DNA from: Pelomyxa schiedti
Taxonomy: Eukaryota > Protista > Evosea
Assembly: GCA_020536535.1 (NCBI GenBank)
Contig: JAHLWZ010000861.1
Coordinates: forward strand, 1 to 64,000
DNA: 64,000 nucleotides
Direction of reading: 5' to 3'
A program made the position numbers and the translations under genes. A model generated the notes under the pieces. It did no database searches. It had not been told where the DNA came from and was given only the letters and a program-made list of their open reading frames with translations. Positions 8,628-18,291 of this stretch are shown here, piece by piece. Numbering within the stretch: position 1 is the stretch's first letter; every line of letters begins with the position of its first letter.

Positions 8628-8899
8628 TCAAAAAAAAACAAAAAAAAACCTTTAGTAGGGATGGATTTAAACACGTTTTTGAGTGGCATCCCAGACACAC
8701 CAATACACCAACCCCCGGCTCACCACTTTCGCGCCCCCCGGACATTAATTTTGCAGTGTCTTTCGAATCGCCTAGTTCAAAGAAAACTGGGTTTTGATTC
8801 TGTAAACAACAAATGGAGGTATTATTTTGAGCTATTTGGGGTGTTGGCTGGGTTTGTACATTTTTTTTGTGTGGTATGTGCTATGGTATGGTTCTGTTT

Positions 8900-11800
8900 T
8901 TAGCTTTTGGCAGCGTCGGCAGCTTTCTTAGCGGCTGCGGCTTTCCTTTCTTCGTCCCTCTTCCTCCTCTCTTCCTTCTTTTGATCCAGTGGAGGTAATG
9001 GCGCCGGTGGCCCCCTGTTGCGATACAGAATCACGGCAATGGATACAAAGAGATGAAGCCCAGTCCACAGTACCGCGAACCCGATGGAGAATATGTAATC
9101 CACAATCACGGACTAGTATGTATGAGGGAGGGAAATGTTGGTTAATCAATTGATAAGCGGAATGTTTGGTGGCTTGGGATTTTTTTGGAAAGAATTACCG
9201 CTGCTGGGAGGGAATCATCTGTCACGTTTGTGTATGATATCCCGAGTTCTAGAACGGCTGAGATGCAGTGACCGACAATGAGGCCAAATGTGACCAGGAA
9301 AGCGGCCAGTAAGTACAAATCCATGTATGTGAGATACTGTGTGCAGAGTTAACGGTTCTAAAGATATTCTCCATCCCCAATACAAAGGTGTTACCTGTGT
9401 CTTGCAAACTGTCACACCGGTGGAGAACCTTTTCCCAGTTACAACACAAATATAAAAGATAGAGATATCAAACATACTTGAAGAATACAACAGCGGCAAC
9501 AATGGCTGCAGAAGCTTCAAATCGGCTGAAAATGGAACTTGCCTCCTTCTCAACAAACACAACAAATCCGGCTCTATTAATGCATTCAGCCCAATGAATA
9601 TCCACAAAAAAAAAAAAAAAAAAAAGAAAGGGAGAAAAAGGGAAAGGCGCTATAACATACGCAACGATGCAAAACATTGGAACGAGGCAATTCCAAATGT
9701 AGTATGCCGTCTTTCTTTGGGCTGTTATCTTGTGGAGGGTGAGAAGTGACTAAACGAATTGAAAAAGAGACCTGAATTCCTTCCACATATTGTGACGGAG
9801 AATAAAATATTGTTGAATGGTAAACATCCCAATCCTCACATTCAGGGGTCGCTGAAGGATGCGTTTTGGTGCCGAATGATTGGTAATCTTGCGTACACCC
9901 ATCATCGATGGGGTTGAGGCGTTCGAATTTTGGGGTAAAGGCCGTAGTAGATAAAGGCCACCTGGAAGTTGGGTGAGGTTTGCGTGAGAATATGAAAACA
10001 TATACAGAGCCATTTCAAATTGGTGTTTATCGAGAGGGAAATGTTGAAGTTGCAGTACTTTGCTGAATTCCCCTTGTGCTTTCCATTTGTACTTCACCAG
10101 TGGGTTATGGTTGTCATTATTCCTTTTATCTTTTTTTAGGGTTTGTTGCTTTTCAATCTCTGTATCACGAGCGTCAATAGTCACTGAGTGGTAAATGACA
10201 CTGAAAGAATCTTGCGAGGATAAATTTTGGAATGTAAGTGGGGGTAGCCAGACAGTCTCTGGAACAACAGTCCACTCTGTTATGTTTTTGTCTTTGGGCA
10301 TGTTTATCTCGTGTTGTGACTGCCAACTCATCCTCATAGAGACAGTCACTTGGAACTGGGATGTGTCAGAAACTTTCAAGTTTTTTATGTGCGCACTTTA
10401 TTGTAAGATTCATCCACCTCCATCAGTTTAACTTTCAACTGTTCAACAGTGATCTTTATCTGCTGGTAATCATCCTGGTGAACTCTCGAACTGGTCTGTG
10501 TTGCTGCCACTATTGTCTTAATGCGATTGGCATCACCATATTTAATGGGCGAATCTGATTCAAATTGCAAATCAGTAAGGTCATCAATTTCCATGGTTTT
10601 TACAGCATTTTCAGTTATCTACAACGATTTAGAAGAATACAATATCCGTGGGATATACTTTGTTTTCTCGACAAGCTTTCACCACACTAGGATGAAATTG
10701 GCACATTGCCAACATCTGACAGAAATCTTCAACTTCCTTACCCAGGGTATGATTTCGAAGTTGAGTGAATAGAATGGTTTGCTCCTCACCACTCAGGTCC
10801 ATTTTATTCTCACTTGCAGCGTACTTTTTCCCAGGACTGTAATATATTCTCAGTAACTGGCATAAATGGCGTAAAACATACATCCAGATATAGGTTTCAA
10901 TTTGCTTGTCAAAAAGTTTCCGTGTGGTCATAGCCGCGAAACTTTTGAGGGTCTGAAGAGTAGTTAATCTTATTGCATATCATACGGGTGTGTACCAGTT
11001 TTTCGCAGTGTGCAACTATTTTCTCTGCAATCTTTTTCTGCACAGGATCCATTATGTTCAGCACGGTCTCCAAGCCTTCCTCACGCTCCCTTGCGGTCAA
11101 TGGAGTACCCCTTGCAGTCATGGGTGAGGAAGTGGCAGGTGCCATCACAGGAGTCCCAGCAGCGGCAGCATTGGAACTAACAACAATACTCGTACTACTA
11201 CTAGTCATCTTCGCAGTATCAACTTCCCCCGCCGTGCCAATGGCACAGCTTCCAGAAAGTGGGGAAGCCCTAGGAGTGGTACCAGATTTTACAGAAGCGG
11301 CCGTCAGACTAGGCACCCTACTACTACTGCTGCTGCTAGTAGCGGGAACAGCAGCAGCAGCAGCAGCGGCGGTAGTAGTATTAGTAGCAGCATGAGCATC
11401 AGTACGAGACTGTGTAGCACCACTCCCACCGCCACCACCACCACCACCGCTAACAACAACCACAACGGCCGCATCCGTGCCAGTCCCCCCCTCGCCGCCG
11501 CCGCCGCCGCCACCACCACCACATGACGACGACGATGACGACGGCGACGCCAGCTTGGTCACTGGTGCACTCTGCGGCACGTCCTCCTCGTCCTCGTCCT
11601 CGTCCTTGTCTTTGGCATTGACACGCCCATCGAGCACCTTGGGCGCACCCTGGCTCCTTCTATTACCCCCGCTGCTCCCGCTGCTGTTGCTCTTGCCGCC
11701 GCCGCCGCCGCTGCTGCTGCTCGCGGAGCGCGGGGATGAGGAGGCCGAGGAGGAGGGGTGGTGGTGGTGGTGGTGGCCGCTGCGCCGCCGCCTCGGAGGA

Positions 11801-11949
11801 GGCCTAGCCACAACACCCGCCGTTGTCGCCGCGGTGGTTGCTGCTGCTGCTGCTGCAACATTTTGCTGGTGGTCTGGGCCGTCCCTGTTGTCGCTACCAC
11901 TTTCTTCGTCGTCCGTTTTGGTCGCGCGCGCCGCTTCGTCGTCCGACAT
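8900..11949 (-). CDS. Cys-less (Pro-loop) pentameric ligand-gated ion channel-like protein with N-terminal low-complexity region, helical repeat and SAM-like domain (copy 1)
   Basis: WLPPLTFQN (WxPxxxxxN), LQHFPLDKHQF (Pro-loop FPxD), pre-M1 RKTAYYIWNCLVPMF, M2 SRFEASAAIVAAVVFFK, YLTYMDLYLL into M3, and a hydrophobic M4 DYIFSIGFAVLWTGLHLF. Confidence 0.8.
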
Positions 11950-12093
11950 CGTGGGATGTATTTTGTTTTTCAGTTTTTTCTCTGATTGATTGATTCAAAC
12001 TTACAAGACTGGGTGGGTAGTAGGTAGGGGGATTCAGTCCCGCGTAACTTACAGTGGTGTGTATGTGGTGTGTGGTTGTGTGTTTTGTGTTGT

Positions 12094-15030
12094 TCAGGAG
12101 GTGCTGCTGTTCTGTGGATTGATCATGGTGATGGGGCGGTGACGGCATGATGAGCAGGGGCATGTGTGCATGCAGATAGGACACCCTGTGGTAGGCATCG
12201 CAGTGGCGCCTTGTATTATCCCTAGGCACTTCTTGCAGAACTGTGCGGGGGTTAGTGTAAATGTAAACGGAAAGGTAAGTAGGTTGCGGTGACCTTGTGA
12301 TTGTTGTCATTGGGGCATAGCAGGCACAGTGGCTGTTTGGATCCACACCTGTTGTGTTGCAGGTGGAATGTAAGCCTAATTTGTTTGGAAAAGCAAGGCC
12401 TACTTGTGGCAGTGACAGCACAAGGAGCTCTTTTGTTGTGGGATAACCTTGTCAATGTTTTGACTTTGGTTCCAAAACTCTGAACAGGGTGTAACACTGA
12501 AGATAACTTCATTGTGGTCAAGGAACTCACTGAGCTGAGTGTCCAAAGTACAGTTCAGAGATTCTGCTGCAGCAAAGACCGAAACTACAGGAATATGAAT
12601 CCTCTCAGGGGAAAACAGAAGCCTTTGAACTTGTGTAATGAAATCAGAGACTGTCATTTTAGGGGTGACAGGAACTTGCACTACAGGTAGAAGTGCACTG
12701 TCAGAGTGTACTGTTACCATCTTCACAGCCTCAGTAATGGCTGTGGCAGTAAGCTCAACTGGTTTCACTGTTGTCTCTTGCAGGATGTGTGTGGTATCTT
12801 TGCTATTCGAGGAGGTGTCCGCGGCTACTGTTGGTGCAGCATTGACCTCGTTTTCCAGAAGTGGCTTGTTTTGTTCTTTACATGGTGTATCAGTTGTCAA
12901 TGTTGGTGGTTGTTGAGGAACGGTAGGAACACTTCGTTGTGGCTGTGAGTGCAATTGAGGCGTGGGTGGCATCGATAAGGGTGTTTCTGCTTGTGCTTGT
13001 GCTTGTGTCTGCTTCTGTGCTTGCACTTGTGGTTGTGCTTGCTTTTGTGGTTCCAGTTCCGGTTGTGGCTGTGGCTGTGGCTGTGTGCGTGGCTGGGGTT
13101 GGGGCTGTGGCTGGAGCTGTGCCTGTGGTTGGGGCTGGGGGTGTGCCTGTGGTTGGGGTTGGGGTTGTGCTTGCGCTTGTACATCAAGTTGTACTTGCTT
13201 TGTGTCAAGTAGTGCCTGTAGTTTCTGGTTCAATTGCACCTGTTGGCTATGTTCGGATTGCTGTTTGTTCTGTACCTGCTGCTGGTGCTGGTGTGGATGC
13301 TGGCGGCGGCGTTTGTGCGGATGCTGATGCCACTCCCACTTCTGCTGTTGCTGCTGCTGTTCTTGCTGTTGCTGCTGTTGTTGCTGCTGTTGTTGTTGCT
13401 GTTGCAAGTTGAAGTTCTGCTGTGCCATTTGGTCTGGTGTTTGTGGGGGGATTTGTTGCCTTTGCCGCAGAGATTCCATCCACATCTGGGTCTGTCGTTG
13501 CCTTTTCTGCAACTCCTCATCTTGTTCCTGCCGAGTTTTCAAACTAGCTTGGCGTTGTTTTTGCCAGTCTCGAAACCGTTGGTCCTGCTGTTGTTTATGT
13601 TGCAGCTGCAGTTGCTGCAGTAGTTGTAGTTGTTGTAGTTGTTGCTGCTGTTGCTGCAGAACAGGCTGCATCCGTTCTTGTTCCCTGCTGTAACTCCACT
13701 GCCAATTTGGTGTGTTCATGCCTGCATTTAACAGGGTCTGCTGATTGTACTGTTGTTGAGGAGTGTTGATATTTAGCATGGCAGGCTGCTGGCTTGGTAC
13801 AGCTGTGGGTACCCACCCTGTTGGTTGTTGTGCTGGATACCCAGACTGTGTTGGTGCCTTTGGTCTTCTATAAGCATCAGGTGTTTGCTGAAGCTGAGGG
13901 GGCACTGGAGAGTTGAACTGTTGTTGAACCTGAGGCTGGAGCTGCGATTGGGGAGGGGCACCGAGCAGTGATTGCTGTGCGTGAAGCTGGGGCTGTTGTG
14001 ATGCAACTTGTGGTCTGTTTTCTACTACTTGTGGTGGAGATTCCACATGGGGTATTTTTTGCTGCCGTGATGCTGGTGGCGTTTTGGGCTGCATTATTTG
14101 CGGCTGTTGGCTTGGTGTTAGAGGAGGCAGGGTGAGAGGGGGGAGTCCTTGGAGAAGTGGGTTTCGGTGAGTCAGATCAGAAACGCACCCGGTTAGTCCA
14201 CCCTGCTGTGTCCCTTGCGCTGCTGAGGTTTGCGTTTGTTGTTGCTGTTGAGGTAGCTGCATGGGCCCGTGTACCTGCGCACCGGAAAGAACAACAGGGG
14301 TACCTGCTTGTAGATGTTGCTGCTGCTGCTGTTGCTGCACCAATGAATTGTCCTGGTCCGGATACTGCATGTGTTGTTGTAGGGCGGGGGCGGCATCATT
14401 AGCAGCAGCGGTGGCCGCCCGCACTCCAGCTCCCGGCTGCTGCTGCTGCTGCTCGTTTGCTTTTCCATGTGATCCGTCGCCGCCGCCCGGCAGCAGTGGT
14501 GGTGGTGGCGCCTGTGCCACTCCCTCACCCTCGCTCGTTCCCCCCTCGCCCTCTCGTGTCTTGTTGGCCGGCGGGGGCACGGGGTGCGAGGGAGCGCCCT
14601 GCACCCCTGTGCTTGTGCTTGTGCTTGTGCTTGTGCTTGTGCTTGTGCTTGTGCTTGTGCTTGTGCTTGTGCTTGTGCTTGTGCTTGTGCTTGTGCTTGT
14701 GCTTGTGCTTGTGCTTGTGCTTGTGCTTGTGGGTGTTGGTGCGGGGTCGTCGTGCACTAGCCGCAGGGCCGTGGGTGGTTGCGGTGGGTGGTGGTGGTCC
14801 TGGTGGTCGCGATCTTGGGGTGGGGCGGCGCCCTCGTCGACGTAGACGGTGGCAGCGCCCTCTTCGTCGTCGCCGTCGTCGGCGGGGACTAGGATGTACT
14901 CTGTGGGCACTTCGTCTTCAACAAAGATGATTTCCGTGTCAGATGTCTCGGGCTCCCCTCCGTCGTCCATGCTTTTGTTGCTGTTGTTGGCAGGGCGTGT
15001 GCTCCCGCCATCAGCGTCTTCGTCGCCCAT
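12094..15030 (-). CDS. Q/P/T-rich protein with a ubiquitin-like domain and a C-terminal zf-4CXXC_R1-type zinc finger
   Basis: An 876-aa ORF plus two spliced exons giving CCHCHKCGSKQPLCLLC...FCKKCL...CPICMHTCPCSSCR. The segment at about 12530-12730 has a beta-grasp-like pattern. Confidence 0.7.
14609..14728 (+). repeat. Perfect (GTGCTT)n hexamer microsatellite, about 20 units, encoding a (Thr-Ser)n tract on the minus strand
   Basis: Seen directly in the sequence. Confidence 0.95.
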
Positions 15031-15099
15031 GGTTTTTTTTTTTCACCAAAATTTTTATCGGAATGAAATTTTTTTGGTATGATCGAAAAGCTGATGAAC

Positions 15100-18000
15100 T
15101 TAATGCAGTTTGAGACCGTAGTTGCGCAGGGTGACAATAATTGTGCTTGACTTGGCCGCCAGCCCGCCAGACGTGGATTTGTCCAAGTCAGGCTTATGGG
15201 CAACCAAACTTGGCTCTGGGGGTCCTGCCCGGCCATACATGAATATCACAATCACGATGAAAATATGCAGTCCAATCCACAGGGTCGCCATTCCTATGGA
15301 GAATATGTAATCCACTGTGACTGCCTGTAGTATGTATCATTAGTAGTTGAATCGGCGGTACTGTTTATATACTGCGGGATTATAGGGAGGCAAATACCGA
15401 TGCCGGGAGGGAATCGTTAAGTTGGTCAGGATGTGCGAGATCAAGTACACATGATATGCTGTGTCCAATAATGAGGCCAAATGTGACCAGGAACGCGGCC
15501 AGAAGGTACAAGTCCATGTACGTTAGGTACTGCACAAAGCAAGAGTAAGAACTCAAGTTAATTGTGTGTGTTACCTGTGTCTTGCAAACTGTCACACCGG
15601 TGGAGAACCTTTTTGTTGTGTGAGGAACAACTTACAACTTTACAACATACTTGAAGAATACAACAGCGGCGACAATGGCCGCTGAAGCTTCAAATCGGCT
15701 GAAAATGGAGCTTGCCTCCTTCTCAACGAACACAACAAATCCGGCCCTGTTTAGTAATTCAACTCCTGAGTGGGAGAAGTAAAAGGCATACGCAACGATG
15801 CAAAACATTGGTGCAAGGCAATTCCAAATGTAATATGTGGTCTTTCTTTGGGCTGATATCTTGCGATAGGTGAGAAGTTTGCCATTTCAAGGAGGAAGAC
15901 CTGGATGGTGGAAACATAATTTTTGGGATAGAATAGCGTCTTTGGGTGAACATCCCAGTCCTCACAATCACCCTTAGCTGCTGGCCTGACAATTTGACCA
16001 AACTTCTCGACTTTTTCCTTTGGAACAAATTTTGGGGTATATTGGGTTGTTACTTGAGGCCACCTGAGTTTTAAGTTAAATTCCCTCTGGGACTTGGTAA
16101 TGGAAAACACACAGAGTCATTTCAAACTTGTGGGTATCGAGTGGGAATTTGTGAAGTTTTAGTATCTCGCAGAATTCTCCATGTGCTTTCCAGCGATATA
16201 TAACGTATGGATTTTTGTTGTCGGTATTTTTACTTGGTATTTTTTTTTGATCCTCTGTAGCGGTTTCGTATGGAACAATAGTCACGGAGTGGCATATAAC
16301 ACTGAAAGAATCTGGTGAGGATAGATCATGAAAAGAAAGTGGTGGTAGCCAGACATAATCTGGAACCACTTCACTTCGTGTATTGACGTTTGCAGTGATT
16401 GGAAGATCAGTCATTGATTTCCAAGTCATCCTCATAGAGACAGTTGCTTGGAACTATTTTTCTGTTGCCATATACTATGGCAGGAGGTGTGGGCAGATAC
16501 CTTGTTGTAAGATTCATCTACTGCCATCAATTTTACATTCACCTTTTCTGCTCTGATGAAAACCTCGTTTTCTTCCTTAAGTTTTTTTGGAGTCTGTATT
16601 GCTCCCACCATCGCCTTGATGCGGCTGGCATCACCATAAGTTATATATGTGCTGGTACCAAGTTTCAGGCCAGTAAGATCACCAACTTCCATTGTTTTTA
16701 CAGAACGTTCTGTTATCTGTTTCTTTTAGGGAAATAACCTAAGAGACATATTACCTTGTTTGCTCTACAAGTATCAATTACGGACTTGTGAAATTTACTT
16801 TTCTCCAAATCTATGCAGAAGCGCGTCACCTCGACTTCCAATACATATCTTCGAAGCTGTGAAAATAATAGAGTACCCTCATCAAGAGTCAAGTTCAAGG
16901 CTGCTCCCAAATGGGTGCTAATTTGAGTATCAAAACCTTTCCGACTTTCCATGAGTTCGAATTTTTCAAAAGCCTTTTTTTTTAGTTTCAATATATTCAA
17001 CGGGAAAATGAGCACACAATTTTCTGTTTTGAGTGCAACATCTTGACTGCAATATTGTCTTGGGTGGGATCACTTCTGTCAAGCACTTTTACTAAGCCCG
17101 TGGAGTAGCTTTGTAGTTGCGAAACTACTATCTTTTGTTCTTCCACTGTCAAATTCAACGTTCTGCTGATTATTAGGTCACTATGGCGAAATTAAGTAAC
17201 ATTCTCCAAACGACGTTTTACTTCATCACATTGGTTCTGCGTACTAATTTCCAGGTCCTGAGAATACGCTGTTACTTGCCAAATTGCAAACTGCGTCATT
17301 AAGCGCACCATTAACTCTTTAGAGTCAGCTATCTTGATAGCAATATCTTGGTGCACAGGATCACATCTATCAAGCACGCACTCCAACCCACAGGCAGCTC
17401 CAATCCTACCTAAAACGCAATATCTAAGTGCTTCCAGGACAAGTTTGTAAACCCCACCCACCAACCCACCCCAGCCCCGCGCCACTATAGCAGCAGTAGT
17501 AGTAATAACAAGGCCGTACCAGCAGCCACCGCCTTGTCGTTAGCATTGCGGGTATTCGTGCCCACATCACCAGGACTGGCCTCCTCGGATATAACGGTAC
17601 GAGGGTGAGGTGGTTTGATTGATGCAGCAGCAGCAGCGGCAGCAGCAGCAGAGGTAGTACTAGTACTAGTAGTGGTGGTGGAGGTGGTGGTTTTAGTTTG
17701 GGTTTTGGTGGTGGTTGTGGTGGATGCATGTGACCCTGGCATGTCGACGTGCAGGTGGTTGGTGTTTGCACATTCCATTACTGGTTGTTCCTGCGGGTGC
17801 CTAGTGGTGGACTGTACCATTAGATGGTGACGATGATGCTGATGGTGGTGGGGGCGGTGGTGGTGGCGTTGGCGTTGGTCACCGCCAGTGGAACTGCCAC
17901 TGTCACTGACACTGACACTGACACCACCACCAGCAGCAGCAGCAGCAGGATCCCCTGTGGTGGTTGTGGTGGCTGCGGTAGCACCTGTTTGGGGGGCTGT

Positions 18001-18291
18001 GCCGGTTGTTTTAGACGCCACCGCCCGCGTGGCCGGGGACTGCGAGGGGGATTGGGATGCTGACGATGAGGACGATGATGATGACGACGAGGCGACGGTC
18101 GACGATGCAAGAGCAAGAGCAGGAGCAGGAGCGGGCGGAGGGTGCCTCGCCGAGGACGGCGATGACGATGATGGGACTGGCCTGCTGCGGGGCCGTGCTC
18201 GTCTATTGTACTGGCTGCTCCGCCTCATCATCTTGCCCGTGGTCGTTGTCGTGGTCTTTGGTACTGACTCGGAGGAGGAGGACGAATGCAT
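15100..18291 (-). CDS. Cys-less pentameric ligand-gated ion channel-like protein with two helical repeats and a SAM-like domain (copy 2; start codon uncertain)
   Basis: WLPPLSFHD, LHKFPLDTHKF, M1 YYIWNCLAPMF, M2 identical to copy 1, M4 DYIFSIGMATLWIGLHIF. Intron positions in the TM region match copy 1. Confidence 0.8.

Follow-up and report, generated by a model that had tools for sequence, protein, structure and literature searches.

Ligand-gated ion channels of the pentameric kind (pLGICs) belong to the most thoroughly studied receptor families, and each characterised member that we know of has an extracytoplasmic ligand-binding domain (LBD). Here we analyse two genes of the anaerobic archamoeba Pelomyxa schiedti (Archamoebae), Pelo_12880 and Pelo_12882, both deposited under the name 'hypothetical protein', which we call copy 1 (protein P0001) and copy 2 (protein P0002). 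They lie on the minus strand of positions 1 to 64,000 of contig JAHLWZ010000861.1 (assembly GCA_020536535.1), a stretch of eukaryotic DNA rich in short introns that we refer to as the window and by whose positions all features are numbered. In our reading, to which we assign a probability of roughly 0.6 as a whole, the pair are old tandem nuclear paralogues encoding divergent, Cys-less, ELIC-like pLGIC subunits that carry a SAM-like cap and hold their LBD in the cytosol.

The closest channel of solved structure is the bacterial ELIC (Erwinia/Dickeya). ELIC, like GLIC and sTeLIC, shares with the amoeba genes a Cys-less Pro-loop of the form FP.D, the Arg that precedes the first transmembrane helix (pre-M1), the M1 Pro and the Y.TY.D motif; the amoeba genes, ELIC and the prokaryotic pLGICs also agree in a core of ~320 amino acids (aa) and in an M3-M4 loop that is very short. 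Unlike ELIC, the amoeba genes are eukaryotic, have 9-10 introns and encode an N-terminal extension of ~450 aa with a SAM-like domain, and their products are without a signal peptide, continue for 41-45 aa past M4 and probably sit in the membrane in the reverse orientation. DeCLIC, from Desulfofustis, also has extra folded domains ahead of its LBD, and it matched the transmembrane region of the amoeba proteins weakly (E = 0.017). In DeCLIC the N-terminal domains are beta-rich lobes that lie in the periplasm and follow a signal peptide (PMC9897478), whereas the extra domain of the amoeba proteins is a predicted helical SAM-like bundle without a secretion signal.

Among eukaryotes, the closest described group is the Cys-less 'Pro-loop' pLGICs of protists, which are uncharacterised, as the amoeba genes are (PMC4795631). 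The survey that described them, by Jaiteh et al. 2016 (PMC4795631), covers Stramenopiles, Chlorophyta, Opisthokonta and Alveolata, and the word Amoebozoa is absent from it. N- and C-terminal segments were trimmed in that survey, and it reports no SAM fusion, no N-terminal fusion and no missing signal peptide.

For the extra domain, the nearest described counterparts are the SAM domains of tankyrase, DGK-delta, polyhomeotic/PHC3, Shank and SARM1, which have the same size and topology as the predicted bundle and superpose on it at 1.6-2.3 Å. Unlike these domains of scaffolds and enzymes, the amoeba domain matches no SAM hidden Markov model (HMM). A full-text literature search found no paper joining pLGICs with SAM domains or with a cytoplasmic LBD, in agreement with the original prediction made from the sequence of this locus, whose author knew of no SAM-fused pLGIC. 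IP3 and ryanodine receptors and CNG/HCN channels offer a functional analogy only, in that a cytosolic sensor controls the pore of the same polypeptide; they are unrelated in fold and stoichiometry, and the analogy is valid only if the topology proposed below is right.

Evidence for an ELIC-like channel core in both copies

The original prediction had proposed two Pro-loop pLGICs fused to SAM-like domains from a set of motifs (WxP, FPxD, a pre-M1 signature, four transmembrane helices and SAM-like strings), and we found all of these on the minus strand in both copies. When a profile of the two proteins was compared with the PDB, ELIC was the best match (E = 4e-11, 45.7 bits). The match was colinear over ELIC residues 99-277: it takes in strand beta-6, the Pro-loop, pre-M1, M1, M2 and the M2-M3 loop and reaches into M3. 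DeCLIC, sTeLIC and GLIC matched more weakly, and metazoan receptors appeared only as ELIC chimeras. The Pfam model Neur_chan_LBD matched P0001 residues 455-665 over the first half of the domain, with a score of 25.7 bits (E = 8.8e-6) that is just under the gathering cut-off of 26; in Pfam, copy 2 had no Neur_chan_LBD match, and Neur_chan_memb gave no match. Among 100 protein-language-model neighbours of the LBD exon in the Atlas, 83 were Neur_chan_LBD clusters (score 0.93), and the feature neighbours of the whole of copy 2 were Neur_chan families, with pLGIC clusters from diatoms, molluscs and xenacoelomorphs. A profile of the LBD exon found no relative in the PDB.

The elements that serve gating are kept in the amoeba proteins: the FPLD Pro-loop, the pre-M1 Arg, the M1 Pro and Y.TY.D past M2. 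FPLDKHQF in copy 1 and FPLDTHKF in copy 2 align to FPFDRQQF of ELIC, and QRKT.YYIWNCL.P aligns to ELIC RNPSYYLWSFILP. A metazoan-type Cys-loop, with two Cys 13 residues apart, is present in neither copy. The two positions are held by Ser and Phe in copy 1 and by Cys and Phe in copy 2, so that the predicted lack of Cys-loop cysteines is exact for copy 1, whereas copy 2 has a single Cys, at the first of the two positions.

Past the LBD the hydropathy profile has four peaks, of which M1-M3 align with ELIC and M4 is assigned by hydropathy alone. The M3-M4 loop is 17-19 residues long, as short as in the prokaryotic members. Read from the ELIC alignment, with what we take to be the ELIC numbering, the pore would be lined by Glu 2', Ala 6', Ala 9', Phe 13' and Phe 16'; the Ala at M2 9' differs from the Leu found there in most pLGICs. 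The M1-M2 loop is acidic and, together with the Glu at M2 2', suggests a channel for cations. From these comparisons we regard it as almost certain that both genes belong to the pLGIC (Pro-loop) superfamily as ELIC-like, Cys-less members, and the identity first proposed for them is thus upheld.

Close relatives were not recovered from other organisms. A profile of the 116-aa LBD exon, searched exhaustively through 1.84 billion representatives with HMMER, had only Pelo_12880 and Pelo_12882 as true matches. Two further matches of that search, P0003 and P0004, were repeat-driven and false. Word-indexed homologue searches with P0002, with the two-protein profile and with P0001 residues 345-800 found only the two proteins, and a scan of metagenome contigs gave 323 pattern matches with 0 confirmed. 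Distant relatives may have been missed, since the exhaustive search covered a 116-aa exon only and the remaining ones rely on shared words.

A SAM-like domain is predicted directly ahead of the LBD

AlphaFold, run on P0001 residues 286-457, predicted a five-helix bundle with a pLDDT (predicted local distance difference test) of 66-88 over model residues 80-155, the last helix of which would continue in the direction of the LBD's beginning. In a full-length model of P0002, the helices of residues 38-120 were the only part to reach a pLDDT of 60-72. A search of 48,161 PDB representatives that was independent of Foldseek placed the SAM domain of tankyrase-1 first (Z 8.5, root-mean-square deviation (rmsd) 1.6 Å, 62 of 63 residues), and the top 50 chains were mostly bona fide SAM domains aligned over 60-66 of 63-70 residues at 1.6-2.3 Å. 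Foldseek against the PDB gave the SAM domains of Scm/Sfmbt, SAMD1, PHC3, SAMHD1 and CNK, with TM-scores of 0.65-0.76 (by target), rmsd of 1.9-2.4 Å and E-values of 0.5-3. Dictyostelium arrestin-domain protein C gave the best match among Swiss-Prot models, in its C-terminal region (E = 0.064). Feature neighbours of the segment included SAM_1/SAM_2 clusters in 52 of 100 cases, at weak scores of 0.68-0.71. On the strength of the model and these matches, the segment directly ahead of strand beta-1 is probably a divergent SAM domain of SAM-like fold.

That this domain and the channel are parts of one product was examined with RNA contigs from two single-cell RNA libraries of P. schiedti, compared over 8700-12400 and hence for copy 1. 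The contigs confirmed 7 of the 10 copy 1 introns as GT-AG joints. In one contig 10170-10355 is followed directly by 10397-10587, so that the exon carrying the latter half of the SAM-like segment is continuous with the first LBD exon; across 10356-10396, then, the SAM-like exon is spliced to the channel, as the proposed fusion demands. There were no RNA contigs over 10588-11033, so that intron 10619-10658, which falls within the SAM-like domain, and the two introns upstream of it are unconfirmed. A further contig lies within exon 1 (11034-11295), and none was seen in the flanks at 8700-8823 and 11950-12400.

The basis for these three introns is the deposited model, an intron of copy 2 (16717-16754) at the position that matches 10619-10658, and conserved codons past the acceptor of the latter. 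Eight such codons stand between the acceptor site and the only Met of the exon, ITENAVKT in copy 1 and ITERSVKT in copy 2, and coding therefore continues upstream of that Met. It is very likely that the SAM-like domain and the channel are on one polypeptide. A SAM-like domain together with a pLGIC is a new domain architecture in a known superfamily.

Predicted orientation in the membrane

Ahead of M1, which begins at residue 664 in copy 1, we found no hydrophobic stretch, the highest 19-residue hydropathy being 1.26 in an Ala/Thr run. No signal peptide was apparent in either protein by a reading of hydropathy and charge, made without a dedicated signal-peptide or topology predictor, and the N-terminus is acidic. 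The lack of a hydrophobic segment is independent of the unconfirmed 5' exons; the exon that immediately precedes the LBD, which is verified by RNA, is hydrophilic too.

The charges flanking the transmembrane helices are unevenly distributed. The 20 pre-M1 residues, the M2-M3 loop and the C-terminal tail together hold 16 Lys+Arg in copy 1 and 10 in copy 2, as against 0-2 in the M1-M2 and M3-M4 loops together in both copies. Canonical receptors have a cytoplasmic, basic M3-M4 loop, and their tail past M4 amounts to a few extracellular residues. In the amoeba proteins the M3-M4 loop has three acidic residues and zero Lys/Arg, and the tail past M4 extends for 41-45 aa, with 13 Lys+Arg in copy 1. 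The M3-M4 loop holds one N-glycosylation sequon in each copy, NVT in copy 1 and NDS in copy 2; the two stand at different positions and are prone to arise by chance, and we discounted them as evidence. The missing signal peptide, the charge bias to the side of the LBD and C-terminal tail, and a domain type that is usually cytosolic incline us, by a modest degree, to an LBD that faces the cytosol (N-in/C-in).

An old duplication with a conserved pore

The introns of the two copies are only 38-58% identical, and the duplication is therefore old. The protein identity between the copies is ~56% in the LBD exon and rises to 100% between pre-M1 and the middle of M3. Over the codons from pre-M1 to M3, 68 are identical, 19 differ synonymously and 5 non-synonymously, and the exons concerned have 90-100% DNA identity. 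Gene conversion as the cause of the identical transmembrane region is ruled out by the flanking introns, which remain at the divergence given above. Because those introns have diverged, we take the pore region to be under strong purifying selection. With their identical pore and diverged LBDs, the two subunits might co-assemble, or different ligands might act on one type of pore.

A proposed arrangement and its alternatives

We propose that each subunit would run from a disordered low-complexity N-terminus through short helical modules and a SAM-like domain directly into LBD strand beta-1, then M1-M4 and a tail of 41-45 aa. With nothing hydrophobic in the ~660-aa N-terminus, and with Lys/Arg on the LBD side and in the C-terminal tail, M1 would insert as an N-in signal anchor. 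The SAM-like domain, LBD, M2-M3 loop and C-terminal tail would then lie in the cytosol, in a reversal of the canonical orientation. Opened by a ligand or ion of the cytosol, the pentamer would conduct across either an endomembrane or the plasma membrane, and five SAM-like domains atop the LBD ring would tie channels to one another or to a scaffold. Still more tentatively, with the chances somewhat short of even, these proteins may be the first of an upside-down class of pLGICs, cytosolic sensors of an intracellular ligand whose SAM caps polymerise or dock the channels to a scaffold.

Several points weigh against this proposal. RNA support is limited to copy 1, the three 5'-most introns of that copy and all of copy 2 being without it. 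Both AlphaFold runs were built on two sequences only, and the full-length P0002 model had a mean pLDDT of 36 and was not usable; the beta-sandwich fold of the LBD therefore rests on homology. Pfam SAM models gave no match at E up to 10 with the full proteins and four cuts of the region, and phmmer of the SAM region against the PDB returned no SAM chain. (A viral methyltransferase that it matched at E = 2 is a chance match.) Since no SAM sequence model matches, only the term 'SAM-like' is justified: the segment called SAM-like in the original prediction stands as a predicted five-helix bundle of the SAM type, and membership of a SAM sequence family does not extend to it. Domains of the same fold, the (HhH)2 domains of RAD51/Dmc1 N-termini and UvrC, score Z 7.6-8.6, level with SAM, and the Atlas shape search was led by HhH families. 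A Z of ~8 is not decisive for a small helical bundle and is, by the note that accompanies the tool, within the chance range of helical arrangements. As to orientation, the positive-inside rule is only statistical in eukaryotes, and SAM domains can be lumenal, as in the EF-SAM of STIM, so that the domain alone does not fix the side.

The alternative that survives best draws on the findings for the bundle: it could be an (HhH)2-type or family-specific helical cap, a modulatory domain like those of DeCLIC, and not an oligomerising SAM domain. The lack of a SAM HMM match, the RAD51/Dmc1 and UvrC scores, the HhH families of the shape search and the breadth of the chance range all suit such a cap. 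It has to contend with the dominance of SAM domains in the top 50 of the Foldseek-independent search, with the SAM_1/SAM_2 feature neighbours and with the Dictyostelium protein at the head of the Swiss-Prot models; in addition, the spacing G-x-x-x-R-I before the last helix, as we read the sequence, suits SAM over the Gly-hydrophobic-Gly hairpin of HhH. We consider such a cap unlikely, if worth keeping in view, and a true SAM fold a good deal better than an even bet.

Less likely again is that the channels have the canonical orientation, with LBD and SAM-like domain extracellular or lumenal and either a missed signal-peptide exon or an N-terminus translocated without one. Precedent is on the side of this arrangement, given where all characterised pLGICs place their LBD and given the lumenal SAM of STIM. 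The gene models would also allow it, in that no RNA contig covers the first three copy 1 introns and the copy 2 annotation is visibly incomplete at its 5' end. Yet the exon ahead of the LBD is RNA-verified and hydrophilic, and coding extends upstream of its only Met in both copies; 660 residues ahead of M1 contain nothing hydrophobic; and the basic 41-aa C-terminal tail and the acidic, Lys/Arg-free M3-M4 loop reverse what the canonical orientation predicts. It would moreover be unusual for >600 aa of folded N-terminal sequence to be translocated with no signal peptide.

The view that these are duplicates in decay or without function, or contaminants that stem from the prokaryotic symbionts of the amoeba, could be argued from a nearest solved relative that is bacterial and from the lack of relatives from other organisms in our searches, but is effectively refuted by ten and nine spliceosomal GT-AG introns with splicing seen in RNA (copy 1), by intact frames with 19 synonymous against 5 non-synonymous differences in the pore region where introns are saturated, and by flanking genes that are eukaryotic (PheRS, RGS, PIG-P and UCH protease).

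Gene models, transcripts and neighbouring genes

The features of both copies are collected in Table 1. Copy 1 has ten GT-AG spliceosomal introns and copy 2 has nine, with intact frames, and 9 of 9 comparable intron positions are common to the two. Between exon 1 and the SAM exon, the deposited copy 1 model has a GTATGT donor and a small exon, of which the exon is conserved in copy 2. The exon models of both copies fit the genome-wide figure of 7.4 introns per gene given in the Pelomyxa genome paper, in which ion channels go unmentioned.

The annotated start of P0002 is an internal Met (17041), and the open frame runs on upstream of it. A helical module of the pattern GL..VL...DP.Q..IA.K occurs at 17000-17158 and again at 17195-17410, where it beats all 500 shuffles, and once before the SAM-like domain of copy 1. 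The outer end at 18291 that the original prediction gave to the pair is the start of a separately annotated 312-aa gene (17192-18291). Since the helical module is shared and the frame is open upstream of 17041, the 312-aa gene is probably the 5' part of copy 2, which would be one gene reaching 18291 with a duplicated module, its model having been split.

Table 1. Features of the two channel genes, in window positions (LBD, ligand-binding domain; M1-M4, transmembrane helices; aa, amino acids).
Feature	Position	Strand	Basis
Copy 1 gene Pelo_12880 (P0001, 837 aa)	8900-11949	-	11-exon set translates exactly to deposited protein
Copy 1 exons 1-6	10996-11949, 10882-10952, 10659-10836, 10397-10618, 10006-10355, 9772-9961	-	
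Copy 1 exons 7-11	9661-9728, 9478-9573, 9395-9428, 9199-9336, 8900-9112	-	
RNA-confirmed copy 1 introns	9113-9198, 9337-9394, 9429-9477, 9574-9660, 9729-9771, 9962-10005, 10356-10396	-	RNA contigs
Copy 1 low-complexity N-terminus, aa 1-285, acidic start, Ser/Gly/Ala/Thr-rich	11095-11949	-	translation; without hydrophobic stretch
Copy 1 helical modules ahead of SAM-like domain, aa 286-375	10737-11094	-	AlphaFold helices, pLDDT 42-66
Copy 1 predicted SAM-like five-helix domain, aa 377-442, interrupted by predicted intron 10619-10658	10496-10733	-	AlphaFold, PDB matches
Copy 1 LBD, aa 455-660	9714-10459	-	Neur_chan_LBD score, ELIC alignment from Pro-loop on, feature neighbours
Copy 1 VWLPP	10239-10253	-	
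Copy 1 Pro-loop FPLDKHQF	10017-10040	-	
Copy 1 M1-M4, aa 664-796, over five exons; M3-M4 loop 19 aa	9026-9704	-	hydropathy; M1-M3 against ELIC 199-277
Copy 1 C-terminal tail past M4, 41 aa, strongly basic (13 Lys+Arg)	8903-9025	-	
Copy 2 gene as annotated, Pelo_12882 (P0002, 505 aa)	15100-17041	-	10-exon set translates exactly to deposited protein
Copy 2 exons 1-5	17018-17041, 16755-16973, 16501-16716, 16113-16453, 15901-16063	-	
Copy 2 exons 6-10	15792-15859, 15651-15746, 15575-15608, 15398-15529, 15100-15324	-	
Copy 2 predicted SAM-like domain, aa 57-122, interrupted by predicted intron 16717-16754	16594-16829	-	alignment to copy 1
Copy 2 LBD, aa 133-326	15845-16563	-	exon 56% identical to copy 1; in ELIC-matching profile
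Copy 2 VWLPP	16340-16354	-	
Copy 2 Pro-loop FPLDTHKF	16124-16147	-	
Copy 2 M1-M4 and 45-aa C-terminal tail, aa 330-505	15103-15835	-	hydropathy; identity to copy 1
Separately annotated 312-aa gene, no Pfam family: low-complexity region, then helical module	17192-18291	-	gene calls on contig

Some details of the read assemblies concern copy 1. RNA and genome differ by T>C and C>T in run X2 and by C>T in run X1, at window positions 9071, 9080 and 11229; alleles, strains or editing could account for this. Both copies agree in every base of the 34-nt micro-exon 9395-9428 (coding FSTGVTVCKTQ) and of a short stretch around it (9388-9433). In X3 and X4, runs of unrecorded library type that cover 99% of the stretch and are probably genome libraries, this piece forms a separate 46-nt contig at a depth of 80-99, against 20-52 in its flanks, which suggests more than two copies of it in the genome. 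The copy 1 intron 9574-9660, between the two M1 exons, is 87 nt long against 45 nt in copy 2 and has a run of ~20 T; the X3 and X4 assemblies break inside it, at 9596-9639.

Between the channel genes, on the minus strand at 12094-15030, lies a gene for a Gln-rich low-complexity protein of 663 aa without a Pfam family, which has a long (Thr-Ser)n run and Gln-Pro repeats and of which only the C-terminal part looks folded. Other neighbours, over ~5100-27041 of JAHLWZ010000861.1, encode a PheRS alpha subunit, an RGS-domain protein, PIG-P, an acetyltransferase and a UCH-type ubiquitin protease. The genes around the channel pair are ordinary eukaryotic ones, without sign of a functionally linked cluster.

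Implications for the channel family

If our reading of SAM-capped channels with a cytosolic LBD is true, it would represent a natural topology inversion in the pLGIC superfamily, in which the same gating machinery reads intracellular signals. The absolute conservation of M1-M3 between paralogues that have otherwise diverged marks the pore as functional. The genes would extend pLGICs to Amoebozoa, a group unlisted in the 2016 protist survey, and they add an N-terminal fusion of a new kind to the periplasmic domains of bacterial pLGICs.

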